DNA of 64,000 nucleotides from Glycera tridactyla (taxonomy: Eukaryota), in the NCBI GenBank assembly GCA_965644265.1, contig OZ286468.1, positions 20,584,001 through 20,648,000 on the forward strand, read 5' to 3'. Position 1 is the stretch's first letter; each line of letters begins with the position of its first letter. A model generated the notes under the pieces. That model had not been told where the DNA came from, ran no database searches, and saw only the letters and a program-made list of their open reading frames with translations. The translations under genes were made by a program, and so were the position numbers. Of the stretch, positions 3,846 through 45,726 are shown one piece after another.

Positions 3846-4466
3846 TTGTGATGTCTTTATATATATATATATGAAACAAGCCGTAACTCCTCCCCAAATG
3901 ATTGATTGAATGTTCGATCAATCATATGTTTATTGATCTATCATTATTGATCTCCCAATTGATATATTCAGGATGGAATAACTTGATGATATAGAATATA
4001 TTGTGATGGCGCAGCAGATGACTTGTATGAGTATGAGAATAAATGGAACAATTCACACACGCCTCTATGAACCTCACATGAACCGCATGAACCAAGGATT
4101 GTATACCTATGCATGTAACTGTCTGTAAGCTGATACTTAAACCAGATGCTTTGCTTAATGGCAGAGGAAAGTAATCATCTTGTGAATAAGTTTGTTCACT
4201 TACGGACTTATCGTCTTCGAACAAGAATTACGCTATGCGTATACATTACGATAACATCACAAGCAAATCTGGTTGGAGGACTAGTTACCCGTAACTCATG
4301 TACCCTATACCCTGAATATCAAATTGACATCAGGTGGTTATAATTGAACTGGATAGTCGGAGCGGGAGGCATTTGCCAAGCAAGGCGCAATAGAATAAGA
4401 TGATCGATGCAGGCAGCAGCTTCCTAGGATAATTTGAATGATTTGACCGAGATAGGTAGTGGTCGG

Positions 4467-4488
4467 ATGGAATATTCAGAGCAGGCAG
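4467..4488 (+). CDS. Candidate first coding exon of the DEG/ENaC gene (MEYSEQA, phase 1)
   Basis: ATG at 4467 follows an in-frame TAG at 4425. The GTAATG donor at 4489 gives phase 1, matching the phase-1 start of exon 8243 (MEYSEQA-D-AGEDSK...). Inference only. Confidence 0.35.
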
Positions 4489-4974
4489 GTAATGCATGGG
4501 CAGATTGTTTGAACATTAGAACCGGAAGTCAGCCATGTTTGCATTCACTAGACACCAACCATGCATGTATGAGCACGCCATTATATGGATAAGTACGAGA
4601 TAGTGGCATCATGTTGGGCGGCAGAAAACCAATTTAATGATGGTGGTGTTGGTTATGTTGATGATGATAACGTTTTGTTGTTATTATTGTTGTTGTTGTT
4701 GTTATTGTTGTTGTCGTTGATGATCGAAATACCCCTGGGGATATTTCTTTGTTCTTTGAAGTTCAGCCTTATTTTCGATTTTTCAGGAAAAAACATTCTT
4801 TTCATAGGGTCCCATGCATCCCCGACAGAAGTGATTATAGGTGCTAGAATGAGCGAAATTGCACAAAAATGTGCGGAATAAAAAAAGCTTCACATAGGGA
4901 CCAGATTGCTGAAAAAAATGTTTCCATATATCGCCATTGAAAAACATCGGAACTGTCATCGATAATATAGCACT

Positions 4975-7760
4975 TCATGGTTCATGGTGCTGGCAGTGGT
5001 CAATGGTGGTAGGGGTGGTGGTCCATGGTGATGGTGGCAGTGGCCCATCGTGGTGGTGGTTCATGGAGGTGGTTGTGGACCATGGTGGTAGTCCATATGG
5101 TGGTGGTGGACAATGGTGGTGGTGGTGGGCCGTGATGGTGTTGGTAGACCATGATGGTGGATGTGAACCATGGTGGAGACTGTGGACCATGATGTTGGTG
5201 GTGGCAGTGGTGCGCGATGGTGATGATGGTCGTCGTCAATGATGGTAGTGGTCCATGATGGTGGTAGTGGTGGTCCATAGTGGTTAACTATGGTGGTGGT
5301 TGTGGATCATCTAGCTGGTGGTAGACCATGGTGATGGCAGTGGTCCATGGTGGTGGCGGTGATCGATTGCAGTGGTTGTGGACCATGATGGTGGCTTTGG
5401 ACCAGGGTGATAGTGGACCATGGTGTTGGACAATGGCAGTGGCTGTGGACCATCATGCGACTGTGGACCATGGTGATGGCTCATGGTTGTGGCTGTGGAC
5501 CTTTGAGGTGGTGGTCCAAGATAGTGGCTGTGGCTCACGGTGGTGGCTGTAGACCAGGATGGTGGTGGTAGTGGTCCGTGGTAGTGGCGATGGTCGTAAT
5601 GCATGTTGGTAGTGTCCATGGAGATGATGATGGTGGGCAATGGTTGTTGCTGTGGACTATGCCGTTGATGGTGAACCATGGTGGTTGGGATGGGCCATGG
5701 TGGGGGGCTGTGGTCCATGGTGGTAGCTGTGGCCCATGGTGGTGCCTGTGGACGATTCAGGTGGAGGTTCATGGCAGTGGCTGTGGACCATGCTAATAGA
5801 TATGAACCATGGTGGTGGTTGTGGATCATCTAGCTGGTGGTAGACCATGGTGATGGCAGTGGTCCATGGTGGTGGCGGTGATCCATTGCGGTGGTTTTGG
5901 ACCATGATGGTGACTTTGGACCAAGATGATGGTGGATCATGGTGTTGGTCAATGGCAGTGGCTGTGGACCATCATGCGACTGTGGACCATGGTGATGGCT
6001 CGTGGTTGTGGCTGTGGACCTTTGAGGTGGTGGTCCAAGATAGTGGCTGTGGCTCACAGTGGTGGCTGTAGATCAGGATGGTGGTGGTAGTGGTCCATGG
6101 TAGTGGCGATGGTCGTAATGCGTGTTGGTAGTGTCCATGGAGATGATGATGGTGGGCAATGGTTGTTGATGTGCACTATGCTGTTGATGGTGGACCATTG
6201 TGGTTGGGATGGGCCATGGTGGGGGGCTGTGGTCCATGGTGGTAGCTGTGGCCCATGGTGGTGCCTGTGGACGATGGTGGTGGAGGTTCATGGCAGTGGC
6301 TGTGGACCATGCTAATAGATATGGACCATGGTGGTGGTTGTGGATCATCTAGCTGGTGGTAAACCATGGTGATGGCGGTGGTCCATGGTGGTGGCGGTGA
6401 TCCATTACAGTGGTTTTGAACCATGATGGTGACTTTGGACCAAGGTGATGGTGGACCATGGTGTTGGTCAATGGCAGTGGCTGTGGACCATCATGCGACT
6501 GTGGACCATGGTGATGGCTCATGGTTGTGGCTGTGGACCTTTGAGGTGGTGGTCCATGATAGTGGCTGTGGCTCACGGTGGTGGCTGTAGACCAGGATGG
6601 TGGTGGTAGTGGTCCATGGTAGTGGCGATGGTTGTAATGCGTGTTGGTAGTGTCCATGGAGATGATGATGGTGGGCAATGGTTGTTGCTGTGGACTATGC
6701 TGTTGATGGTGGACCATTTTGGTTGGGATGGGCCATGGTGGGGGGCTGTGGTCCATGGTGGTAGCTGTGGCCCATGGTGGTGCCTGTGGACGATGGTGGT
6801 GGAGGTTCATGGCAGTGGCTGTGGACCATGCTGATAGATATGGACCATAGTGGTGGTTGTGGATCATCTAGCTGGTGGTAGACCATGGTGATGACAGTGG
6901 TCCATGGTGATGGTGGTGATCCATCGCAGTGGTTGTGGACCATGATGGTGGCTTTGGACAAAAAGTGATGATGGACCATGGTGTTGGTCAATGGCAGTGG
7001 CTGTGGACAATCATGCGACTGTGGACCATGGTGATGGCTCATGGTTGTGGCTGTGGACCTTTGAGGTGGTGGTCCAAGATAGTGGCTGTGGCTCACGGTG
7101 GTGGCTGTAGACCAGGATGGTGGTGGTAGTGGTCCGTGGTAGTGGCGATGATCGTAATGCATGTTGGTAGTGTCCATGGAGATGATGATGGTGGGCAATG
7201 GTTGTTGCTATGGACTATGCTGTTGATGGTGGACCATGGTGGTTGAGATGGGCCATGGTGGGGGGCTGTGGTCCATGGTGGTAGCTGTGGCCCACGGTGG
7301 TGCCTGTTGACGATGGTGGTGGTGGTTCATGGCAGTGGCTGTGGACCGTGCTGATACATATGGACCATGGTTGTGGCTATGGACCATGGTGGTGACTGTG
7401 GCCATGGTGGTGGTGATGGCTGTGACCATGTTGGGGTGGTGGTTGTGAACCATGGAGGTGATGGTGGTGGTGGTGCTCCATGGTGGTGGTGATGGCCATC
7501 GTCAATATTGGTAGTGCTCCATGGTGGTGGTGCTGGCAATCGTAAATATTGGTTGTGCTCCATGGTGGTGGTGATGACTGTGACCATAGTTCTCCATGGT
7601 GGTGAATGTGACCATGGTGGTGGTGATGGCTGTGACCATAGTGCTCCATGGTGGTGGTGATGGCCATCGTTAAAATTGGTAGTGCTTCATGGAGGTGGTG
7701 TTGGTGGTCCGTGGTGGTGATAGTGACGGTCCATGGGGGTTGTGGTGGTTCCACCATCTC
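4975..7760. repeat. GGT/CCATGG-rich minisatellite with a 519-bp higher-order unit (about 4 copies) and degenerate flanks
   Basis: ctagctggtggta recurs at 5311, 5830, 6349 and 6868, exactly 519 apart. Confidence 0.95.
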
Positions 7761-7814
7761 ATACAACTGGCGTTGCCATTATTATGGCTCACCCATTAGA
7801 CAGCCTTGATTATA

Positions 7815-7993
7815 CAGTCAAACCTGTTCTAAGCAGCCACCATTTGGGAAGGCAAAAAGTGGCTGCTTAGGGCAGGTGGCTGCTAAGAGCAGGTTAATTA
7901 AAGTGAAAAAACCTCCAGTGAGAAATTCAAAAGTGACTGTTTAGGGCAAATGGCGCTGCTTAGTACAGCGGCTGCTCAGGACAGGTCAGACTG
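7815..7993. mobile_element. Tc1/mariner-type MITE, 179 bp
   Basis: TA target-site duplication on both sides; TIR cagtcaaacctgt versus acaggtcagactg. Confidence 0.8.
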
Positions 7994-8242
7994 TATATCT
8001 CTCCATATAATTCATTTATTCATTCCCATATCTTATCACTCATCCATCAAGTCATCGAATTTGCATTCATTTATTCATTCATCCATCCACATGTGTTTGT
8101 TTTCTATTTCGTCATTCATTTATTCACTGATCTGTCAATATTTTTCATCATTTCATTTTCATTATTCTTTTTTCATCTATTCATGTTTCCTATATTTGTT
8201 TATTTGTATCCATGCATGATTCATGCATTCACTCTCTCGCAG

Positions 8243-11300: not shown

Positions 11301-14300
11301 TTGGACAGATGTTTGAGCCAACGTGGATCCCTACACAAGCGTTTGCGAGCCTGGGACAGTCCTCTCAGTGGAGCACGAATACGGATAGAAGAGGTTTATC
11401 ATCGTTCTACCATGACTAATTCACATTGAAATTCATTGGGGCTGGGCACAATCACTTGATGCTGATTCGCTAGTTGAGCATGGACGTTATGTGTCTGGTG
11501 CTCACTTTTTTATGGTGAGAGTTACTGAAGCACGCTGCCCGGGGTCTTCTTACCTGAGTGATCATAAAATGAGAACTTGCCCTAACCCACCCTAACCAGG
11601 TATGCATGTGGATGAATGTTAATGTATGTGTTCATTTGGTTTCTGTTATGGATGCAATATGAAAGAGAATGAAAGTCCTGTGTGCCGGCTCATTTTCCAA
11701 GAGTATGTGAGAGTGGGTAAGTGTGACATGGTATCACTGCTACTTATTCCCATTCTCGTTTGATATTGCTCCGACCCCTAACTGCATGAGAAAGCCTGTC
11801 ATAGCTAACTGCATATTTATATATATTCGTATATATTCTCCCGCGAGTTTGAATCAAGTTCAGTGGATATGAAGTTGAATTGAATTCCCAGACTAGTATT
11901 GATGTTGAGGTACATACATTTTCTTGCATGAATAGGAGAAATTCAATACTGCAGTGGCTTAGTGGGTCACCGGTATTGTATTCATGTCAGAGGGGTTAGA
12001 CATTATGACAAATAACATCCCTGAAACCTGGTACATATCGCCACAGAATGACCGCTTGGCTGCCCAGCACACATTAAAGTATAATAACAATTCTCCCATC
12101 CAATAGTTTTCAGCAAATTCGTACTTCACCAACTTAGTTGAATGATGCAGCACATCAATTCAGTTGATGATTCGTGAAAGGCTTGATTACTTCTCAATAT
12201 TTCCTCCATCTTTTCTTTTCCCGAAAGTTCATCTGTGCATTCTGTCATGGATACTCGACATTATGTGGGTAGGTATGAAATTGGGCCNNNNNNNNNNNNN
12301 NNNNNNNNNNNNNNNNNNNNNNNNNNNNNNNNNNNNNNNNNNNNNNNNNNNNNNNNNNNNNNNNNNNNNNNNNNNNNNNNNNNNNNNNNNNNNNNNNNNN
12401 NNNNNNNNNNNNNNNNNNNNNNNNNNNNNNNNTTTGGCTATGCGATTTTTCATCGACCAGAAAGAGTATACCCCTGGGCTATCCGAGACAGCTGGGATAC
12501 GAATGTTGGTTAACAATCAGACCTACACACCCTTTCCAAAGCAGGATGGCATCAGCGTGGCTCCAGGCGCAGCCACCTTCCTCTCCCTCAAACGGGTTTG
12601 TCTTCACCAATCATCTTTTTGTATATAAATAAAGTAGAGCCTGTATCAAGCAACCACCCCAGCTGAATGTGAAGTGATTGCTTGATACAGGTGGTTGCTT
12701 GATACAGCTAAATCATATTGAAAAATAATCCAGCTGGATATGGGGAAGTTATTGCTCAAGACAGGTGGTATTGAACACAGTGGTTGCTTAATACAGCTTC
12801 TACTGTATGTCAGTGCTGAATCACATCACATGATTCAATTGACCTACCAATGTGAATCATCTATATTCGAGATGGAACACTAGTCAGTCCTCCCTCTTTG
12901 ATAACGAGCACTGTGACGTCATAATTTACATTCAGGCGATTTGATGACGTCATTACAATCGGTATTGATCTAATCTGATCACCTTCAAATGTCATATAAT
13001 CCGGTTTGGGCTGAAGAGAACAAATCAATCAATCATCCATTCAATCAAGCCTCCTCAGAGCAGACAGTCCCTTGTTTGGTCTTTCGGCATATAAAACGTC
13101 GTGTGGATAACTACATGGCTGTATTGAGACGCCAATTGAAGACCGTCTGGCTGCGGTGTCTTCATATGGAATTGAACCTGATCTTCCGGTCTTATAGTAG
13201 CAGTGCAAATAAACAACTCAAAGTTGCTATCAGCCATCTGGTGATGCTACCTGTCGTTGTTGATGTGTTGCTAATCCTGTCACCTCATTAACTGGATGTG
13301 CTAGAAAATCAACTTTCAACCCCACCAACCAGCCTACTAGGTCAATTTGATGAAAGCTACCTGCCGATGGCGCGATTGCATCCCTTCGTCAGGCTGCAAT
13401 ACATCATGTCATTTATAAAGCCAGCAGTAAGGGTCTCATGACAGACATTGGCCTCATATTGCTGCGCATCCATCCAAGGTTTACTGCCAACATAAGATGC
13501 CGACACACGTCCTCTCTTGCCACTTGTGAATGTACAGTTAAAACATTCATTCTGTGCCAGTATGGTCTCAATACAGACCTGTTCTCTCTCTAACAGATGG
13601 AGTATGAACGAGCCTCATCCCCGTATGGCGATTGTGTGGATGGCACCACACTTGGATCTGAGCTGGGAGAGACGAACATGTGGCATCGAATGCACCCTCA
13701 CCTGGGATACACCACAGATGTAGGTTCGATAAGATAAGAGATATTGTCTATCTTTGTATATTCACCTTGAGATTAGATATTGAAAGGACGTTGATCAAAA
13801 TTGATCAATCAATCACCTTGAAATTCACGTTTGATATGATAGTAGATGTTGTCTATTTATGTAGTATTCACCACGAGATGCAGGATTGCTAGGATGTGAA
13901 ATGTTGTCTTTCTGTGTAGTAGTCACCTTGGAATTCTGATTTAATCACACAAAGATGTTGTCCATCTGTGTGGAATTCACTTTGGGATTCAGGGATTCAG
14001 GTTTGATGAGATGAGAGATATTGTCTATCTGTGTATATCCAGCTTGAGATTTGGTATTGAAAGGACGTTAATCAAAATCGATCAATCAATCACCTTGAGA
14101 TTCAAGTTTGATAAAATAAGAGATGTTGTCTATCTGTGTAGTATCCACCCAAATATGTGGGTTTGATTAGATAAGAGATTTTCTTCTATCTGTGTTGTAT
14201 CCACCTTGGGATTTAGGTTCGATCGGACAAGTGATGTGGTGCATTTCTGTAGTATTCACTTTGAGATTTAAAGATTCAGGGTTGATAAGATGAGCGATGT

Positions 14301-25679: not shown

Positions 25680-28105
25680 CAGGCAGAATCTCACAAAGGC
25701 TGAACGCCAATGTATCAGAGAGCTTAAATCTGACCCTTCAATTATCATCAAGAAGGCGGACAAGGGCTCTAGTATAGTCATCATGAATCGGGAAAACTAT
25801 CTCGGGGAGGGATACCATCAACTATCTGATGGTAAATTCTATGAGAAAACCATGGAAAACCTGACTGAGTTGCACAACAAAAGAGTAAAATCACAAAATG
25901 GTGAAATCGGCCCCTAGGCTGCAGAATACATAGTGTTCAGTGAACCGAGGACATCCCAGTTTTATCTTCTTCCGAAAATTCATAAGAAACTTGATAGTCC
26001 CCCTGGACGCCCAATAGTTTCGGCTAATGAATGCCCCATGAAGAGAATTTCAGCATTTGTAGATTTTTTCTTAAATCCATTTTGCTGAAAATTAAGTCTT
26101 TCCTCAGGGACACCACTGACTTCCTTCTGGAAATAGATTATATAGGAGAAGTCCCGGCTGGTAGCATCTTGGCAACTCTGGATGTAACCAGCCTTTATAC
26201 CAATATCTCAACTGACAAAGGAATTGAGAGTGTTCGCAGGTTTCTGTCCATCCACAGGAGTACCCCAGGTAACCCGTCTAATGACTCTTTGTGCCGCCTC
26301 CTGGAAACCACATTGAAGTGTAATAATTTCCAGTTCAATGAAGAGAATTTCTTACAGGTGGGGGGCACAGCAATGGGCACCAGAGTGGCACCAAGCCTTG
26401 CGAATATTTTCATGGCAGATTTTGAGGAACATCATGTAAACTCACCAAAATCACAACCAATATTCTACAAAAAGTTTTTGGATGACATAATCATGAACTG
26501 GACCAAAGGGGCGGACGAATTGGACAAACTTGTCAGCTCACTCCATCAAATTCACATTGGAACAATCAACCGCCAATGTGAATTTTCTAGATACCATACT
26601 ACACCTGGACCCGGATGGAACACTTTGGACTGATCTGTATTGCAAACCTACAGACAGCCACTCATACCTGCACTACACATCTGCACACCCACGACACAAA
26701 GAAATGGGGGTACCTCATAGCCAGCTGCTGCAGGTTAGATGCATTTGCACTAGAAATAGTGATTTTGTCAAACATAGCACAGTTCTGATGTGTCATTTCA
26801 TGAGGAGAGGCTTTCAATTGGATATTCTCAAAGAGGCTTTCATGAAAACTCCTTGGAAGGACCAGATGGACCTCCCCAATGAGCACCGGTTGAAGAGTCT
26901 AGATACAAGGTCAAATACAGATGAATCAGATATCTTTCTGATTTTGACCTTCAACCCCAACTCAACATCTATACAGAGTCTGATCAGATCACAGTGGGAC
27001 CTTCTAAAAAGAGCCACCACAACCAAGCTCTTAGCAGAGACCAGGGTTATATTTGGTCACAGACAGGCACCAAATTTGAGGGATCTTTCAGTAAGAGCAA
27101 AGCTACCACAAATCTGTCCAGAAAAGGGGAAACATCCATGTAGCAAACACATCAATAAATGTAGCAACATAAAGTGTAGATTTTGCCCACTTTTAGACAA
27201 AACAGGTAGAATCACAAGTACCACCACTGGACGGGAATATGATGCCAAACGGAATATTACATGTCAAAGCAGTAATCTCATTTACTGTATTACATGTAAA
27301 ACATGCTCCAAACAGTATGTAGGGCAAACTGGGAACAGCATACATCAACGTTTTGGAGCACACTCAGGGGCCATAGGCAGGAAAAGTATGGCAGAAGATG
27401 TCAGCCTCAGAGACATGAAGATTCATGTAGTAGACTTTTTTTTTGTCCAAAAAGGGAACATAGTGTCACTCTGAGACTCCAAATAGAATTTAATTGGATC
27501 CACAGATTGAGGACCATGCTCCCACTTGGGCTCAACACCAAGGATAGAACCCCTCTTGAAAAAGGATGTCAAAATTAGAGGTTCTACCGGGAAAATGGGA
27601 AAATAAAAACAAAAGGGCAACCAAAATAAATTCTATGTGTCACCCTTTGAGCCCACCCAGGGATCACCCAGCCCTCCAGGGGACACCCACAGAAATGAAA
27701 TACTCATCATGATGACTTAGACTTGTAGGTGTGATCTGGTCATGCCACTTGCCTCATCACGTAATTCCTATAAATATTGACATGCCCACCATACACACCT
27801 TCATGATCAAGGCATCAATCTCCCCTGGCTGCCTGTACACCTACATTGGAATCCATAGAAAATGGTGATACAGGCACTCTCCACGGACATCATGCATTGA
27901 GAAACCAGTGTCATATACACAGTAGATCACCCCCTGAGAAGACTTTTCAGGTCAGAAAGTAACTAATTTTCAAACCTTTGGCCATCTGCTAGAATATCTG
28001 AGAAGAATAAATTATTCCATGATCCTGATATATTATCTAGCAGATTTGAATGATTCAATTCATTATGGCAACTGATGAGGCCTATATGGCTGGAACTCGG
28101 ATTAG
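25680..28105 (+). mobile_element. Penelope-like retroelement (RT + GIY-YIG, Neptune-type), 5'-truncated and frameshifted
   Basis: Motifs KKADKG, LLPKIHK, GRPIVS, LDVTSLYTNI, GTAMGT, FLDD, KPTDSHSYLHY, Cys-rich linker CSNIKCRFCP, LIYCITC..CSKQYVGQT, WIHRL.T..P.GLN. TAG at about 25915 and several frameshifts. Confidence 0.92.
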
Positions 28106-30940: not shown

Positions 30941-32629
30941 GGTCTGACATTCAGCGACTCGCCTCTCGAATGCCATGCCCTGGCCTGGTTACGAGCGTTA
31001 TTCAACTCGGTCGACAATAAGACAGAATGCACTGCAACGGACGAGTTAGCAGACCATTACGTCCCGCTCACCGACCTGCTCATTCATTCAGGCCGTAGCT
31101 GCCAGCCTGAAGAGCGACTGATCTGAGCAGCAAATCCCAGGCGGATGAAACCATGAATACAACCACGGGGTACACTCCTCAATATTGCTGTTATCAACAC
31201 TATCTCATCTCGGTGGATGTAACCACCGACAAAACCATGAGGCCTAGATCTACTTTTTCAAAGTTCCGTCTCGAATGGAGGGATATGACAAAGCGCTGCC
31301 ATGGGAAGAGTCCTTGCATACTTTGCCGCTCCCACCCTACGAAACTCAAATTATGACATAACAAGGCAATCAAACCAAGAACGTACATTGGATGTGATAT
31401 ACGTCCTTGGAGAAAACATAAAAAAACGTTTACTGAGTGGGCGGAACGGTCCGTAGTGATCATGATGAGTGATAAACAAGAGTTTGTGTCTGAATTGACA
31501 TAGCTGCTGCTCCCGCATGACCTAGTTTGAATTCACCGAACCCGACAAATAACTGCTGCGAGGTGGCAGTCACAGTTGACTCGGCACTTGACATTTTTAT
31601 CAGGAGTGACCCCGATGATGGTATCGCGTCGGCGAGAACACAAAACCACGAGTAATAACCACCGCGGCTTTTACGTTTCGGAGTGAAGATTCATTGGAAA
31701 ATACCCTTTACAAAGGCCAAAAATTCGGGACATGCAGGTAAGGAACCGTGTGACATATGTCACATACCAACCATGATATCAGAATAGTCATTTGACGTCT
31801 ATAAACATTGTGAAGTTGCTATACGTTTCGCGTTCGTGATCGCGCCCACATATGCACGGGTTTGACCCTCTCCACCCTGACTCATAGAGATACCCACGTC
31901 AAATCTCAATTCAGATATATCAAACTAAGCTGTGTTTGTATGGTGAGTGATACTGATTTTGCCTAAATGCAGAGAGTTCATAGGAACCACGATGAGATTA
32001 TTCACTTCATCGTCTGAATATGCACTTTGTTCGCCATATACGGACTTCGCAGTTATGATATGTCACATAGTTATGATATGTCATATACAGGATAAAGGAT
32101 TTCTAGCGAAACCAATCTGCGAAAAAGGCAACCCATCGGTCTGATACAATATGATGTCGGATTTAACCTATTTTTTTTAATTCGGTCTTTCCACCCCTGA
32201 TTCTATCTAGCAGTACATGGATATTACCTACCCTGGGCATGTTCAGGACTATTTGTGCACGCAGTATCAATGAATAAATCAGCCGTCCTGATTCCTGCCG
32301 AATGGGGTTCGAACGAGGACCGGAATAGCTAGTGGCTGTCTCTTCACCATCGCCGATTATTGTTGTCCGTACGCCTCTCCATTATGTGGAAATTCAAAGA
32401 TAGCTGGTTGACTGTTTTAGGGAATGAGACAGAAATTGAACCTACAAGTACCTGACATTATCGTGGATCAGGGTGGCATCTGGCAGGCAGATTCATAACA
32501 TTACCTGCCCTATCGATAAATCAACCTACCTGTGCCAGTAGGGCGACCCTTAGCCTAGAGCCCTGTAAAGAGGTAGGTCAGCCACCCAATCTTCTCGACT
32601 GAGCTACATGCTCCCTCCCCTTGGGTATG

Positions 32630-33047
32630 AACAGGGAAAACGAAGAGCGAAAGTTAGTAATAACAGGGAAAACAAAAAGGGAAGGTTAGTAATAACAGGG
32701 AAAACGAATCGGGAAGGTCAGTAATAACAGGGAAAACGAAGAGGGAAGGTTAGTAATAACAGGGAAAACAGAAAGGGAAGGTTAGTAATAACAGGGAAAA
32801 CGAATAGGGAAGGTCAGTAATAACAGGGAAAACGAAGAGGGAAGGTTAGTGATAACAGGGAAAACAGAAAGGGAAGGTTAGTAATAACAGGGAAAACGAA
32901 TAGGGAAGGTCAGTAATAACAGGGAAAACGAAGAGGGAAGGTTAGTAATAACAGGGAAAACGAAGAGGGAAGGTTAGTAATAACAGGGAAAACGAATAGG
33001 GAAGGTTAGTAATAACAGGGAATACGAAGAGGGAAGATTAGTAATAA
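32630..33047. repeat. 32-bp minisatellite, about 13 copies
   Basis: aacagggaaaacgaagagggaaggttagtaat with period 32 (32630, 32662, ...). Confidence 0.95.
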
Positions 33048-33399
33048 AAGAGAGTATTGATAACAAAAGCCGAAAACCGGAATCCGTACAAGATCAGTCA
33101 AATGATGAGAGTCGCATCAACCAAAAAGACACTTTGAGAAACTTATGCACCAAGCTCCGGGCATCCCTACCAATGTCTTCAGTGAGATGATCCAATATGG
33201 GAAGGCTTTAAAAGAATAATCTGAAATAAAGAAGCACTCAAATGTAGCTATAGTATCAAGTGGAATGGTTTACAAGGTGACTAAATGAAGTCAACAAAAG
33301 TATCTTGAAAGCAGGGAAGCAATCGGATTGAGTGTAGGATGGTCTGTCTTTCGATTGAAACTAGGCTTGAAATGGTAAACAGCAAGTGGATGGACATAT

Positions 33400-34049
33400 G
33401 GAATTAGTTGGAGGGGTAGATTGCTGTGTAGGTAGGTGATAGGGTTGGTGAGTGCTTTTGTCGATGAGTAGTATTGGGTAGGTGGGTGGATGATCAAAGC
33501 TGATCGGTTGGTGGTTGGGTCGGTCTGATGGCGGCTGGTGAGTGGCTAGGTGGGTTGGTGGAGGAGTCGATGGGTAGATTGGTGGGTAGGAAGGTAGGTG
33601 GGTGGGTGAGTCAGTGTGTAGGTGGGTTGGAGAGTCGGTAGGTGGGTGGGTGGGTGAGATGTGGATTAAGTGTTTAGGGGAGTGGTCGGGTAGGTCGGTG
33701 GTTGAATGGGTTGGCAGGTTAGTGTGTAGGTGGGTTGATAGTCGGGTGGATGAATAGGTGGACAGGTTGACAGGGTTGGGTGAATGACTGCATAAGTTGG
33801 TGGATGGATGTTTGGGTAGGTGGGTGGGTGAATAGGTGGTTAGGTTTATAGGTGGATAGTGGACAGGTACTTTGCAGGGTGTTGGATGGGTTGGCAGGTG
33901 GGTAGGTCAATTGGTGAGTGTATTGGTAAGTTTGGAGGGTTAGGGGTTGGGATTGGGAGTAAAGGTAAGTGGGTAGGTCGTTGGGTTGATGGGTTGGTGG
34001 GTGGTCAAATTGGTGGATGGATTAGAAGATGGGTAGATGTGTAGGTTGG

Positions 34050-34132
<83 letters not shown>

Positions 34133-35200
34133 ATGGGTAGGCGGTTGGGTGGGAAGGGGCGGGTAAGTGGGTGCATGGGTGCGACGGCAGGTTCATGGAT
34201 AGATGTTTGAGTAAGATGATGGGTAGATTGGTAGGTTGATGGGTAGGTGAACAGGTATGTGGGTGGTTGAATGAGTGGATTGGTGAGTTAGCAGTGAGGG
34301 GAATGGTAAGTAGTGGATAAGTAGGTTGGCTTGTGGGTGGTCAAGTCAAAGGGTAGTTGGGTGGGTCGGTTGATTGACAAGGTACTTGGGGTGGGTAGGT
34401 GATTGGGTGGATAGGTGGGTGGGTGGGTTGGTAAGTACATTTGTCGATGGTCAGTGGTGGATAGGTGGGTGGATGTTCAGGGGAGGGTGAATGGATGGGT
34501 GGGTCTGTTGGTGGGCGGACTGGTGAGTGGTTAGGTAGGTTGGTTGATAGATGCGTAATTGAAGGGTAGGTGGGGAAGGTTGAGGTATGGGTTGGTGGGT
34601 TGGTATATAGGTTGATCGAGGAGTGTTTGGGTAGATCGGTGGGTAGTAGGAAGGTAGGTGGGTGGATGAGCGATCGGGTAGGTGGGTTGGGGAGTAGGTA
34701 GGTACGTAGGTGGGTGGATGAGTGAGATATGGTCAAGTGTTCAGGCGAGTGAATGGGTAGGTGGGTAGTCAAGTTTGTTGGAAGGTTGGTCTGTAGGTGG
34801 GTTTGTAGTCGGGTGGATGGATAGGTGGACGGGTGAATAGGCAGCTAGGGCAGGACGGTAAGTAGACGGGTTGGTGGGTGGTCAAATTGGTGGATGGGTG
34901 AGTGGGTGGGTAGATGGGTGGGTGGGAAGGAAGGTGGGTATTTGTGTGTGGATGGATAGGGTGGGCAGGGGATGGGTGAGTGGGTGCATTGGTGGGTCGT
35001 TAGGTTCGTGGATGGATGTTCAGGTAGGTAGATTGGTAGATTGGTAGGTTTGTGGGTAGGTTGACAGGTGAGTGGGTGGGTCGATAGGTGGACACGTGAG
35101 TTGTTAGGTGGATGAGTGGATTGGTTGGTAGAGGATGATAAGTCGGGTCGGTGAGTGGGTAGGTCGGAGTGTCGGTGGGTAGGTTGATGGGTGATGTACT
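33400..35200. repeat. GGTG/GGTA-rich low-complexity tract with (GT)n at about 34052-34130
   Basis: Direct inspection; strong G/T strand bias. Confidence 0.9.
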
Positions 35201-35229
35201 CAGTTAGAGAGAGATGGGGTCATGAAAAA

Positions 35230-36450
35230 TACTGCGAAGCCAGACTGTTTGTCTTGAGGTCAGACTCGAAAGTGCTCAAATGAAATGCAACTTCGGTTTC
35301 GGATGTTTTCGTATGCAGCATAGGCAAAGACGCGGCTCTCGGTTTTTTTTCGGAACTATGAACAGGTGTTCCACGAAGGAGCATAGAGAGCAGCAGGGGG
35401 TGTAATGATCAAGCAGTTGTGACAATTTGCAGGAGGGCTTTGTGGATAAAGGACAGTTTTTCAAAGTCAGTTGTTGTTCGATAGGAAGCCGGTGTATTTG
35501 GTTCGGTATAGACGACACAGAGATTCTTAGCCAACTGAATCTTGCGAAGGTGAGGTATTTGGGTTGTCAGCATCCATAATCTGATTTCAGCATTGCATCT
35601 AGTACGGGTATTTAATGTCATTATTTTGAGAACTTGTCACCATCATAAAGATAGAAGTTCACTTAGTGCTCCGTAAAGTATCACATAGGAGCAGATTTTA
35701 TTTGTTAAAATTGGTTGGGCCAGGGACAGATCCTTGAGATATGGCATAGGTCAGTTTCTGGCCTGGGGACTGAGAGCCAGAATCGTATACCCTTTCATTG
35801 ATATTTAGTGTAGGTTTGAGTGAGACCAGGGAAGGAACAATCTTGTTTGCTAGCCTGTTCTGTAAGATTGTTTGATAGTCACTATTGAAATCTGCATGCA
35901 GTTCAAGCAGAATAAAACAGAGGGGTTTCATGCATCCAAAGGCATGAGGTTATCCTTGAGGGCATAGCTCAGTGATATAGGGAGGATTGGAAATGGGGTA
36001 GTATATGTTCTGATTTACAGATTCAGATGTGATTTCTCAGTATGGGTCTTATGTGAGTTGAATTGAGATGATGCATCTATCGAGCACATGGATCAAGTGT
36101 TGACTGAGTCATGAGAGCATGCCATGGAGGTGTGGAGGAGATCAACTGTGAGATTTCCGGGAAAGTCACAGGTGTGAAAGATAAGAGATCGATACAAGAT
36201 GCTAGTTTCTGACAAGTAGCGTCGGTTATGGTATTATGGATTCTATCTATTTTTTTGGAGAAAGAGTTGGGAAGTCAACATCTCGGGAGACCACTGGCCC
36301 CTTGAATGACAGTGCCCACTGGGTACTGACCCACAGTATGACTACATCCTCACAGAATACTGACCCCCGAAATAACAGAATCTGAACTGAGTACCAACCC
36401 TGACCAATTGACCACTTGGAAGAATCAGCTTCTGAAATATCAGAGTCATG
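35230..36450 (-). mobile_element. Decayed L2-type LINE fragments
   Basis: QGSVPGP remnant and L2-like C-terminal remnants on the minus strand. Confidence 0.6.
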
Positions 36451-40060: not shown

Positions 40061-40326
40061 AGCGATTTTGTGTGGACAGTTTGCCGATAGTCATCAGATT
40101 AATGCATGATTCCATCCACATGAAAATGGTAGGGTATGTCATGAACTGATGAATACTTCCACTTGACAGACTTTCCGAGAGCGATGATTGTAGGGTCCGG
40201 ATGATCCATCGTTCATAAATTATGAGAACGCGTCATACATACTCAACCGGCCTATTGCATGCCATCGAACCACAGCCAACCAATTACCCAACCATTCGAA
40301 CAAACCTCTGTTGCAGGTCACTAGTG

Positions 40327-40531
40327 ATGGATGACAATAATATAAGTTCCAGCCCGTATCGCGGGCATGCCATCCTCATTTGCAATGGGGTGGTCAACGA
40401 AAAAGGAAAATTCAGGTCGGGCGTCGCAAAGGATTTCGAGATGCTGAAAGAGACATTCGAGAAGCTCAGATTCCAGGTCATTGAACTGTTCGGTAAGACA
40501 GACCTAGAGATCCTCAAGGCAGTCAAGAAAG
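40327..40531 (+). CDS. Caspase exon 1 (p20 N-terminal part)
   Basis: Reads [51 protein letters not shown]...; acceptor before 40317, donor GTACGG. Confidence 0.9.
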
Positions 40532-43500
40532 GTACGGATTTCATCAGTTGTTATGTATTTTGTTATTTGAACCGAGAAAATGTTAGCCCATCGTTCCTCC
40601 GTCTGTACCAGGAACCGCCTTTCCAATTTGAGTCATATTTTCGCCGAATGATAAATATAGCCAACCCAGGACATCTAGTTGTCACAGCACAGAATTTACC
40701 TGATGGTACAAAACATATCTGCTCTTTTGATTCACTCCTGAAGTTCGACAAGTGAACAGGTCCTGATGCTCAAAGTATCTCGAGTTGGAATCAGCTCCTT
40801 ATACTGGAGCGTAGTTTGACATGAATCCTACGATATTCACCTGCCACTAGTTCTGATATAGATTCCCAAAAGCGCTACGATTTTGATATCCACCTAGTGG
40901 TACAAAATATATCCGACTTTTGGGGTACTTAGGATCCTGGAACGTTCACTGTCACTCAGTAACCATGAAGGTTTGATTCCCACCATTTTTTAGGATATCC
41001 AGGAATTATTATAACATTGCGCAACTTCAGACCGCTCTAATCATTCAATCGATCATGAGCTATATGCCTATTTGATGAGGTAGTCGATAAAACAATCACA
41101 GAGTTTCAGCCTATTCTCATTCAAATATCTCAAACATTGTTTACAAACCATGCCCATTCTAAATTCGTACCCAGATTGATTCTATGAAAAAACGAAACCT
41201 CATAATGCCAGAATATATGAGGATCTGACTGATATTAATCAAGTTTATATTCTCGATAATCTGAATGTTTAACCATATACCTTACTTTATCGGATGTCTC
41301 GAGAGTATGGAACACATGCACAATCTGAAAGAGGCTGTCCCGTCAGAGTGGATAAGTGGAAATTGCAGCGATCATGGGCCTAATGATGTTTTGACCATCC
41401 CACCGCCCATGATACTGGCACATTCTACACGAAATCACAATGCAGATTCGTGCTCTGTCTCTGCCCATTGACCAGCTCACCCGTTCAGGGGTACAGAATA
41501 TGGCATGAACATCTCCGGTGAAACTACATTCATTCGGCTGGATGATGGGACCCCAAACCAAAAACATCAGATCATGGAATAGGGTGGTTGTACCGTACAA
41601 CCCAAAATGAACCATGAAAAAATCAACCTGAATTTCAATTATACTCATTTAGCTTGCTAAAAGGCCACTGGGCGCAGGGAAATTGTCCGCAGGCTGATGA
41701 ACCATTTTCGTTGATTTGAACCTCTGTTGTCTTTGATTGCAGTCGCTAGAATGGACCATTCTCAGTGCGACTGTTTGGTTGTGGCCATATCAAGCCATGG
41801 TGGGACAAGAAAGAAGCAGATGGACCTGGGCTATGACATGGAGGGTTACGATTTCTACGAGGAAACGGAGATCTTTTACGCAGAGGACGGCGGATCATAT
41901 GAGATTGGCCAACTGACAGAAGAATTTTCGGAGGAGAAATGCCCCTCACTGAAGAAAAAACCGAAGTTGTTCTTCATACAGGTAAGGTTACTTCATTCTC
42001 TTCTAAGACTGGCACTTTCCACACTGAGCTTTATGATTGGTATCATCCAAAACGTTCACTTGGAAGTGTGGTGGTATCCCAAGATATATCCCTATTTGCA
42101 TCTTCCTATTTCACGATCTGCACATTTTCGTGAAGTATTGTTATCAGGCATAACTATGAGCTTCCAGTCAGCCACATAATTTGAGTATGCCATTGATAGG
42201 TTCCTTGTATATCTGTTTCTGGAGGTGTGTCACAATCATTTTTTGTCAGCTGATGCTGCACTTGAACCAAACTATGATATACAAGTGAGAAATGATGCAG
42301 GGGAAACATACTGCAATCACAGTAGGTCATGTTTCGATGACGAACTAGTACCAGTTCTGGCTCTGTCGGGCTGTGGCGAGATTCACAGGTATGTGTGGGG
42401 GCATTGTACTGTGAACAGAGCAGGACGATTGGACTGCTAGTTCGGGGTTGACACTTCACTTCGTTGAAACGAAAGGTAAGATCGAGATAGGCCCGTAGTT
42501 AGACGGATCAGTTCTATCTCCTTCTTCGTACAATGGGGTTACCTGCGACGTTTTCCAGGATTGAGGAACAATACCAGATGTCAGAGACAAACAGATCATA
42601 TCATGCAGAATTGGTGATAATATATCAGATGCATCCTGTAAGAATCTCGCATATATTGTGTATGCCCCTGACCAGATACACTACCTCTTTCTAGGTAATG
42701 TACTTTGTGTAAATCATTGCTTTGAACTCAAGTGTTGGCCTCAAATAAGTCAATTATGCTATCAGTGAGTACCATTCCATTTTCAAATGATGTTCTGCAG
42801 ACATCGCTCACAGAAACCTTGAACGCAGCATGATAGGGAACTTGAAAGATCATCAAGTGGAAGTAGCAGACAGTCCGGACACACATTTACCAACCTCACA
42901 TAAACATATCGAACCTGATGACAGCATATCTAACTATGTGGTTGGCTAGATCCGGACATTCATGCCCGATAGCTATGCTTCTATTTCAAGCAATTTGCAA
43001 CACTTTAGACAAGAAAAAGCATCAGGTTCGGAAAATACTCAACCAAAGTTTTCAATTACGCACTGTCATATCCAAACCAACTAGCAATAATGGGGACCTT
43101 ATACTTGCAGTACAATCATGTCTTTGTTGCCCCCTTCCTTCCAAACCCTAACCAGGACTATGGGAGGGTGATGATGATGTGGTCCTCATCTGCCAGTCCA
43201 AGCATCCATGTGTGCGTTCATCCATGCCTCTATAATGATGATAATGATGATGGCAATGGTCATTTATATAGCGCCTTCCCCTCAATGAGCTCATGGGCGC
43301 TTTACAATGATATGTACCTGAAAAGCAAAACATAGAATCGAGTTGGTCGGAAAGCAATATTGAACAAATGAGTTTTGAGTCTGCTGTTGAAGGTGTTGAA
43401 GGTAGGTGAAAGTTTGATGTCCAATGGCAATGAGTTGTACAAGGATAGGGAAGCATGGGAACAGGCACAATTCCTCAGTTTCTGACAGAATGTTTTGACA

Positions 43501-45726
43501 GCAGTTGTGACAGGTAGTTGAGTGTCATGCCATGGAGAGCCTTGTAGTTCATGGACATGATGTTAAGAAAATCCGATGTTCGATAGGGAGCCAGTGAAGC
43601 TTTTTCAAGATATGAGTGATGTGTTGGTGGTGACTGCAGGATACTGTTTATCTAGCTGCACAGTTCATGACATGCTGTAGTTCACTGATGTGGATCTTCG
43701 GTTTACCGTGAAGAGCTCTATAAAAGTAATCAAGTTTGGAGGAGATTAGTGAGTGGACAAGGACTTCTGTCCATTCATTATTCTCCTATCAGCATCTTCA
43801 GATTCAGTGCACCGATCATAACCAAGTCAACTTTCCTTGTAGCATCAATATGTCCAGATGCGCACTCGACAGATTGATTCTGGGGCTCACTGTAATTCAT
43901 GTCACATCCGCGGGGAACATTGCATCACTGTTGCCTTATTTTTATAGGCCTGTCGAGGCGAGGATCTGTGTGAGTCGGTGAAAGTTGGGGGAAATGCACC
44001 GAAGAAGAAGGAGTCAGACTCAATTGAGGAGCAGGAAGGGGTGGAACATACGCTGGATAGGCCAGACGTACTGGAGTTCGAGGTCCTGCCTACCACTCTC
44101 TCCGTCCTGGATCCCCCGATCAAGTCATCGCTGGTGGACGACGCGAGCCCGGGCCCTCCCGAACCTGAAACCAAACATGATGATAAAAACATGATGAAGG
44201 AAATAAACGAGCCAGTCGAGAAGAATGAAGAGATTGTCTCCAGGAAGATGGTGCTGAGTCGGGACTACCTGGCCATGTGGGCATGTCCGCCAGGTAAAAC
44301 AGATCTCAGTTCCTATATATTTCTACGTTCCGATCTTAGTCCCTTCCTCTTCCTCCGGGTATTCCCATCCACATCCTTCCCTGACTATCTATCTTTGTAT
44401 CTATCGTCATATCTATCTCTGTATCTATCTATCTATGTATCTATCTCTGTATCTATCTATCCCTGTATCTATCCCTGTATCTATCTATCTCTGTATCTAT
44501 CTATCTATCTCTGTATCTATCTATCTCTGTATCTATCTCTGTATCTATCTCTGTATCTATCTCTGTATCTATCTCTGTATCTATCTATCTCTGTATCTNN
44601 NNNNNNNNNNNNNNNNNNNNNNNNNNNNNNNNNNNNNNNNNNNNNNNNNNNNNNNNNNNNNNNNNNNNNNNNNNNNNNNNNNNNNNNNNNNNNNNNNNNN
44701 NNNNNNNNNNNNNNNNNNNNNNNNNNNNNNNNNNNNNNNNNNNNNNNNNNNNNNNNNNNNNNNNNNNNNNNNNNNNNNNNNNNNNNNNNNNNNNNNNNNN
44801 NNNNNNNNNNNNNNNNNNNNNNNNNNNNNNNNNNNNNNNNNNNNNNNNNNNNNNNNNNNNNNNNNNNNNNNNNNNNNNNNNNNNNNNNNNNNNNNNNNNN
44901 NNNNNNNNNNNNNNNNNNNNNNNNNNNNNNNNNNNNNNNNNNNNNNNNNNNNNNNNNNNNNNNNNNNNNNNNNNNNNNNNNNNNNNNNNNNNNNNNNNNN
45001 NNNNNNNNNNNNNNNNNNNNNNNNNNNNNNNNNNNNNNNNNNNNNNNNNNNNNNNNNNNNNNNNNNNNNNNNNNNNNNNNNNNNNNNNNNNNNNNNNNNN
45101 NNNNNNNNNNNNNNNNNNNNNNNNNNNNNNNNNNNNNNNNNNNNNNNNNNNNNNNNNNNNNNNNNNNNNNNNNNNNNNNNNNNNNNNNNNNNNNNNNNNN
45201 NNNNNNNNNNNNNNNNNNNNNNNNNNTCTGGCCGTCCGTCGGTCCGTCCGTCTGTCCACCCATCCGTCCATCCACTGTTCGTCTATATCTCTATACATCT
45301 ATCTATCCATCTATCCATCTATCCAACTACCTATACACTTCTATTCATGCATCCATCCTCGCACTCCAATCTATCTATCCATCCATCCATCCATCCATCC
45401 ATCCATCCATCCATCCATCCATCCATCCATCCATCCATCCATCCATCCTCTCTGTCATACTATGGTATGTCGCAGGTTACTTCGCCTTCCACACGAGTGA
45501 GGGCTCTCCGTTCATCAGGCGGCTGTGTAAAGTCCTGGGTGACGAGAAGAACGAGGATGACCTGCTCACCAAGCTGACAGAGGTCAACCGGCTGGTGGCC
45601 ACCGAGTACCAGATGCAGGGAGACCAGGAGTTCCTGAAGGGCAGGCGCATTGTACCCTCCATTGAGCATATGCTATGTCATCCAATCCACCTCCAGAAGA
45701 AGAATGGACTATCGTATGCAGGTTAG
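40327..45726 (+). CDS. Caspase (peptidase C14A) gene, 4 coding exons, 346 aa, no prodomain identified
   Basis: Exons 40327-40531, 41743-41981, 43948-44293 and 45476-45726 sum to 1041 nt with consistent phases. Motifs: RG.AILICN, RSG, SHG catalytic His, [12 protein letters not shown] catalytic Cys, PGY...GS.FI..LC. Confidence 0.95.
41743..41981 (+). CDS. Caspase exon 2 (catalytic His)
   Basis: Reads [16 protein letters not shown]...[15 protein letters not shown]; GTAAGG donor. Confidence 0.95.
43240..43730 (-). mobile_element. L2-type LINE 3' end in caspase intron 2
   Basis: Triplet-repeat tail followed by atttatatagcgcc, characteristic of L2 3' ends, plus degenerate C-terminal coding remnants. 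Confidence 0.5.
43948..44293 (+). CDS. Caspase exon 3 (catalytic Cys, long linker, start of p10)
   Basis: Reads [10 protein letters not shown]...[12 protein letters not shown]; tttttatag acceptor, GTAAAA donor. Confidence 0.95.
44380..45447. repeat. (ATCT/CTGTATCT)n and (ATCC)n microsatellites flanking an N gap in caspase intron 3
   Basis: Direct inspection; gap at 44599-45226. Confidence 0.9.
44599..45226. other. Assembly gap (N)
   Basis: N run. Confidence 1.
45476..45726 (+). CDS. Caspase exon 4 (p10)
   Basis: Reads [21 protein letters not shown]...[14 protein letters not shown]...[23 protein letters not shown]. Confidence 0.93.

Follow-up and report, generated by a model that had tools for sequence, protein, structure and literature searches.

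The caspase gene described here lies on the forward strand of a 64,000-nucleotide stretch of the Glycera tridactyla genome (assembly GCA_965644265.1, contig OZ286468.1, positions 20,584,001 to 20,648,000), which is referred to below as the window and in whose numbering the features of the gene are given. It is an intact effector-type C14A caspase, essentially without a prodomain, in which the arginine contributed by loop L3 to the S1 pocket of canonical enzymes (R207 of caspase-3, R341 of caspase-1) is replaced by histidine. What defines animal caspases is that they cleave strictly after aspartate, a property credited to two arginines and one glutamine; large and divergent caspase repertoires occur in invertebrates. 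The window gene is one of about 15 loci that form a lineage-specific clade with fixed remodelled substrate-binding loops, whose members are on balance probably active effector-type proteases with a changed substrate preference.

Gene organization and family membership

The gene occupies positions 40327-45726 of the + strand, on which all features below are located, and comprises four exons with GT/AG borders at all three introns and a spliced open reading frame of 346 amino acids. Exon A (40317..40531) contains the start codon (ATG 40327) and encodes about 11 residues followed by strand beta-1 and the p20 Arg of the FRSG motif (AGG 40414-40416). Exon B (41743..41981), flanked by AG and GT, encodes the catalytic His of SSHG (CAT 41796-41798) and the insertion that follows it, and its final codon is the Gln of QACRG (CAG 41979-41981), a motif that consequently straddles the B/C junction. 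Exon C (43948..44293), again with AG/GT borders and in continuous frame, opens with ACRG, including the catalytic Cys (TGT 43951-43953), and proceeds through an intersubunit linker of roughly 100 residues into the start of the small subunit; its motifs CRG..ESV and IVS..RDYL..PPG are common to the window copy and its paralogues. A Gly codon is split by the last intron (G at 44293, GT at 45476-45477), beyond which exon D (45476..45726), preceded by an AG acceptor, supplies the remainder of the small subunit with loop L3 and strand beta-6 and terminates at TAG 45724-45726. The intron between exons C and D (44294..45475) is microsatellite-rich and contains an assembly gap of 628 N at 44599-45226. 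The intronless homologues P0002, P0153 and P0154, found in a metagenome as described below, are continuous through PPGYYAFH, which argues that no exon is hidden in this gap.

Scanned one by one against PF00656 (Peptidase_C14), whose gathering cut-off is 21.4 bits, exon A reaches 23.7 bits, exon B 40.0 and exon D 28.0. In the PDB, exon D comes closest to caspase-3, caspase-7 and a resurrected ancestral effector caspase, in each case to the small subunit (E ~5e-5). No CARD or DED was found: exon A matches no other Pfam family, and the 14 kb upstream of the gene, which contain a Penelope-like retroelement and repeats, hold no coding-looking exon for either domain; a non-coding exon upstream of exon A is possible. 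The dyad characteristic of C14A is present in the window gene as the His of SHG and the Cys of QACRG. In the S1 pocket typical of this group (Arg179, Gln283 and Arg341 of caspase-1), equivalents of the first two residues are present and that of Arg341 is His. Pseudo-caspases are recognized by loss of the catalytic Cys, the catalytic His or both; here the two residues are intact, in the window copy and in every one of the 13 paralogues checked. The C14B metacaspases and paracaspases possess an acidic S1 pocket that takes Arg or Lys at P1; the window protein does not belong with them, as it retains the basic p20 Arg and the Gln and all its best matches are C14A caspases.

The histidine of loop L3

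According to the preliminary description of this DNA, the codon CAC (45490-45492) puts a His where the S1 arginine is expected, and the spliced model and multiple alignments bear this out. The stretch of loop L3 from the aromatic residue to GS is one residue shorter than in caspase-3. Pairwise HMMER alignment to PDB caspases sets the His opposite caspase-3 Asn208 and leaves Arg207 gapped; MAFFT alignments of 8 and 55 sequences put it in the Arg column. The HMMER register was dropped in favour of the multiple alignments, in which loop-length intermediates place the His at Arg207. P0017, a relative with the same short loop, carries Arg right after the aromatic residue (FRRAS-GSWF, versus FHTSE-GSPF in the window protein). 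In either register, loop L3 of the window caspase is devoid of Arg.

Several further substitutions accompany this one. Phe (TTC 45487-45489) aligns with caspase-3 Trp206, Pro (CCG 45508-45510) replaces Trp214 and turns GSWF into GSPF, Ile (ATT 45649-45651) stands in a Pro-anchored register for the Gln of KQxP (caspase-3 Gln261), and Glu-His (GAG CAT 45664-45669) replaces Val266-Ser267 in the dimer-interface strand. The changes of S-W to A-F, of the Trp of GSWF to Pro and of the KQxP Gln that had been pointed out earlier are thus all real, as is the retention of the catalytic His, of QACRG and of the FRSG Arg, each of which is found in the spliced model. One detail needs correction: the small-subunit stretch quoted in that description lies in exon D except for its PPG, which comes from exon C.

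The same description had named another arginine in the S1 pocket as an observation that would overturn it. One candidate, an Arg of RRIVP regarded as a relocated arginine in place of Gln261, was rejected, given that the Pro-anchored register yields Gln to Ile instead. No compensating Arg for the S1 pocket emerged from the sequence alignments, in which the sole new conserved Arg nearby is a conservative Lys-to-Arg change at position 259. Among 137 motifs parsed from the best 150 of the 870 proteins obtained in the profile search described below, the L3 position is occupied by Arg in 123 and by His in 5.

A paralogous clade in the same genome

A search of the 2.04-Gb assembly of the species with exon D recovered at least 25 paralogous exons, and a profile of the His-type copies then split off 15 loci (118-131 bits) from the next locus at 75 bits. 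The window contig (C28) carries nine of these loci, among them a cluster of five at 86.6-86.8 Mb; the others are distributed over C58, a contig of 388 kb (three loci), C51 (two) and C26 (one). The three on C58 have counterparts on C28, at synonymous divergences (dS) of 0.02-0.12, and may be haplotigs of the cluster there.

The exon-D peptides of the 15 loci are 40-61% identical to the window copy. All 15 encode His at the position in question (CAC in 11, CAT in 4), and the columns Phe4, His5, Gly9, Pro11, Arg56, Val59 and His64 are invariant among them, Arg56 being written with four codons (AGG, AGA, CGC and CGA) from both arginine codon families. Synonymous divergence from the window copy is at least 0.85 and mostly saturated, and the median ratio of non-synonymous to synonymous divergence (dN/dS) over usable pairs is 0.24. 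Invariance despite saturated dS, mixed synonymous codons and low dN/dS together indicate that the signature residues are held by purifying selection. Upstream exons were sought in 10-kb stretches around 14 paralogues, 13 of which had such exons in range. The arrangement in four exons is found again in these stretches. All 13 copies that could be checked carry S[ST]HG and [AG]CRG, and each copy for which exon A was recovered also has the p20 Arg.

Beyond the His-type loci, other odd L3 loops occur (L014, L015, L018 and L019, on contigs C32, C17 and C34). FTRENGS, FSRPSGS and FSRRSGS carry the Arg one residue later, and the loop of L019, FSSPKGSPF, has neither Arg nor His. Judged from these loops, the genome carries several distinct remodelled caspase pockets. 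Downstream of one paralogue on C51, the end of exon D (…RHIVPSITHML) is repeated in tandem at least four times, about 155-200 bp apart (L033:9442-10000, corresponding to G000:C51:5413141-5413699, with further matches to 5414038).

Signature residues and predicted structure

The clade signature consists of columns that are conserved both in the clade and in 49 canonical caspases yet differ between the two, and is given here in caspase-3 numbering. In loop L3 the clade has Phe at position 206 (18/18; canonical Trp 36/49), His at 207 (15/15; canonical Arg 47/49) and Pro at 214 (18/18; canonical Trp 47/49). Closer to the C-terminus it has Arg at 259 (18/18; canonical Lys 42/49), Ile at 261 in the Pro-anchored register (16/18; canonical Gln 46/49) and His at 267 (17/18; canonical Ser 40/49), preceded at position 266 mainly by Glu. 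Two more signature columns are Ser at 119, beside the catalytic His (17/17; canonical Leu 39/49), and Arg at 191 (15/17; canonical Ala 39/49). Arg64, His121, Gln161, Cys163 and Ser213 are retained, so that the clade keeps three of the four residues lining S1, namely the p20 Arg, the Gln of QACRG and the Ser of GS. This Ser lines S1 in caspases generally, and Trp206 and Trp214 wall S2 and S4.

Position 266 is the centre of the caspase dimer interface. The titles of PDB entries among the fold matches show V266 as a target of interface-mutant studies, and the top PDB sequence match, 3itn_A, is a caspase-3 chain with IESML where other caspase-3 chains have IVSML. The dimer interface of the clade, and hence its zymogen activation, may differ from that of caspase-3. 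Across the clade linkers the alignments reveal no conserved autoprocessing Asp; Asp residues are present in the linkers, and the position equivalent to IETD is variable. In addition, both the clade and its relatives with an FRR-type loop contain an insertion of about 19-20 residues right after the catalytic His (window 41799-41900, exon B).

An AlphaFold2 model of the homologue P0154, built from a 54-row alignment, reached a predicted local distance difference test score (pLDDT) of 89.1 and a predicted template modelling score (pTM) of 0.87. Within it the linker alone is disordered, the L3 region scores above 90, and the post-His insertion forms a long beta hairpin (residues 89-95 and 105-115). 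The model displays the C14A alpha/beta fold, and its top PDB matches in Foldseek are caspase-7 and caspase-3 (E ~1e-26, target TM-scores 0.93-0.95).

Occurrence outside this genome and proposed order of changes

A profile of 15 exon-D peptides, searched against 1.84 billion representative proteins, returned 870 at E <= 0.001. Among the best 150 of these, the full signature of His, GSPF and RR(I/V)VPS is confined to P0001 and P0002 (with P0151), and two more, P0153 and P0154, each of 311 amino acids, came to light in a word search that started from P0002. All of these, the only proteins of this type found outside this genome, trace back to a single metagenome sample (GCA_013332675.1 / SAMN14350216) or to the re-assembly of it at ENA. 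Three of them, P0002, P0153 and P0154, are encoded by complete genes that lack introns; their sequences include the catalytic dyad, the p20 Arg, the post-His insertion and the clade signature and share 34-36% identity with the window protein. No annotated proteome in the searched collection holds a His-type caspase, and a word search of the protein collection with exon D gave no match, the proteins of the species being apparently absent from it. The named proteins that come nearest, for example a Babylonia caspase-3-like protein and an ant caspase-1, show an identity of about 34% and have retained the Arg. In the searchable literature, no caspase clade with His at Arg341 was found, and nothing relevant on QGCRG or on the role of Gln261.

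P0002 (L021:245-1159, contig JAAUYI010013899.1) begins with a signal-peptide-like hydrophobic stretch, MCMSIGQALLLLLVIMSS, which is not present in P0153, P0154 or the window protein; it could denote a secreted or membrane-anchored caspase, or else a miscalled start. The open reading frames that neighbour the metagenome gene on its contig have no Pfam matches.

In a weakly resolved tree of the small-subunit piece (76 columns), 19 of 19 rows with His and GSP form one group with a Shimodaira-Hasegawa-like approximate likelihood-ratio test (SH-aLRT) value of 88, within which the metagenome genes are nested. The same group also holds two long-branch derivatives that lack His, L019 (FSS) and P0027 (FN). 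Its neighbours are the copies of the same genome with a shifted Arg (L014, L015 and L018) and then the FRR-type clade. Under the simplest history, loss of the KQxP Gln and shortening of the loop would have come first and a single change of Arg to His would have followed; the FRR-type and shifted-Arg relatives look like the stage that preceded the loss of Arg.

Proposed substrate recognition and alternative explanations

In caspase-1, Arg179, Gln283 and Arg341 hold the P1 Asp (PMC11121540). The shorter and partly charged side chain of His in place of Arg would leave a wider and less basic S1, and Phe and Pro in place of the two Trp residues would reshape S2 and S4. Such a pocket is expected to bind a P1 Asp more weakly, and another P1 residue, for example the longer acidic Glu, would probably be preferred, or else binding would come to depend on protonation of the His; preferences at P2-P4 would diverge from those of canonical caspases as well. 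The preliminary description had regarded the window protein as a catalytically armed caspase with a remodelled substrate pocket. The alignments agree with it on both counts: the window copy and its paralogues retain the catalytic dyad as well as the p20 Arg and the Gln of QACRG, and the changed columns are fixed across the whole clade. The relaxed, non-Asp or pH-dependent specificity that it also proposed is conjectural.

Since the Cys/His dyad is conserved throughout, the clade is read as a set of active proteases, and a changed substrate preference is the reading that we favour, with modest confidence; its members probably cut targets other than those of ordinary caspases. A bolder version can be put forward tentatively, as possible rather than probable: that the clade forms a new specificity class within C14A, in which the strict demand for P1 Asp has been dropped (for Glu or uncharged P1 residues, or for acidic ones at low pH), and that it would have multiplied to about a dozen genes to serve a function particular to the lineage, which might be immunity or cell death brought on by stress. 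Several observations weigh against the favoured reading. The retained p20 Arg and Gln could suffice for recognition of Asp; the protein that was folded is P0154, a homologue 34% identical to the window protein, rather than the window protein itself; and the branch leading to the window copy is fairly long (0.73, versus a median of 0.31). With regard to expression, nine sequencing runs from three studies contain 46-64% of the sampled words of exon D, and their small totals (5-88 million letters, against a genome of 2 Gb) suggest that they are transcript data; the records label them RNA as a guess, and expression of this copy is putative.

It is also conceivable, if somewhat doubtful, that these are ordinary Asp-specific caspases with a tuned pocket, differing in kinetics, pH dependence or P2-P4 rather than at P1. 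The three of four S1-lining residues that are kept would accord with this, as would the capacity of His to donate hydrogen bonds and, when protonated, to bind a carboxylate, and the caspase-7/3-like fold of the predicted model. However, 47 of the 49 canonical caspases and 123 of the 137 parsed motifs have Arg here, which implies that this residue is not dispensable for canonical function, and several further subsite residues have changed alongside it. Even a change as mild as that of Arg341 to Lys in mouse caspase-12 is regarded as predictive of a loss of normal function (PMC11121540). A different role would be that of a non-proteolytic regulator or decoy resembling cFLIP or caspase-12, which would associate with active caspases by way of its small-subunit interface; in vertebrates, caspase paralogues whose pockets are damaged do serve as regulators (PMC11121540), and the dimer-interface strand of the clade is remodelled, with Glu-His for Val-Ser. 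We consider this unlikely, as the dyad, needless for a decoy, is kept in all 13 paralogues that were checked, as well as in three metagenome homologues, at identities of 34-60%.

That the His reflects a sequencing or assembly error, or that the window copy is an unexpressed pseudogene, is very improbable. The assembly gap in the adjacent intron, the comparatively long terminal branch, a codon read from the assembly alone and the putative status of expression could all be cited in its favour. Yet the same His recurs at 14 other loci and in an independently sequenced metagenome, the four exons join at canonical splice sites into an open reading frame, comparison with the paralogues gives a dN/dS below 1, and exon D occurs in nine small runs from three studies.

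Other features of the window

Upstream of the caspase gene, positions 26031-27474 (+) contain a remnant of a Penelope-like retroelement, with a reverse-transcriptase open reading frame followed by one for a GIY-YIG endonuclease. Its closest relatives are mainly unnamed metagenome proteins, together with one Pocillopora protein at 30% identity, and its Atlas cluster is commonest in Cnidaria. An exon-like open reading frame just after an N gap (12433-12628, +) matches the Pfam family ASC (amiloride-sensitive sodium channel; E 9e-6). G-rich repeats with a strong G-over-C skew (0.35-0.63) occupy 4000-8000 and 32000-36000, and a 32-bp tandem array of 13 copies lies at 32630-33047.

Comparison with known caspases

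The clade represents a natural experiment on the evolution of caspase specificity, in which the catalytic machinery has been kept, the S1 Arg has given way to His and the neighbouring subsites have been rebuilt. If cleavage at residues other than Asp proves true, substrate predictions and DEVD-type assays in this animal lineage would miss these enzymes. Small, prodomain-less and intronless versions exist, and should therefore be easy to express and profile.

Caspases-3 and -7 are the best PDB sequence matches of these proteins and share with them the fold, as seen in the P0154 model, and a short N-terminus without CARD or DED. The SHG and QACRG motifs, the p20 Arg (R64 of caspase-3), the Gln (Q161) and the order of large subunit, linker and small subunit are likewise common to both. 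Unlike caspases-3 and -7, the clade carries the substitutions L119S, W206F, R207H, W214P, Q261I and V266E-S267H, an L3 shorter by one residue, the post-His insertion of about 19-20 residues, and a linker of about 100 residues without a conserved Asp at the IETD position.

Mouse caspase-12 offers a second parallel, being a natural paralogue in which the S1 arginine of L3 has been swapped for another basic residue (PMC11121540). It is, however, a single CARD-containing gene of inflammatory type and is regarded as a probably non-functional protease, whereas in the clade the change is to His, is accompanied by further fixed subsite changes, and is spread over multiple genes that keep the dyad. Further counterparts are the FRR-type proteins (P0009, P0010, P0017, P0025 and P0031) and the shifted-Arg copies L014, L015 and L018, which resemble the clade in their short L3, in Phe for Trp206, in the loss of the KQxP Gln (R-x-I/V-V-P) and in the insertion, but differ in keeping an Arg in L3, in its usual place or shifted by one residue, and in that most of them retain GSWF.

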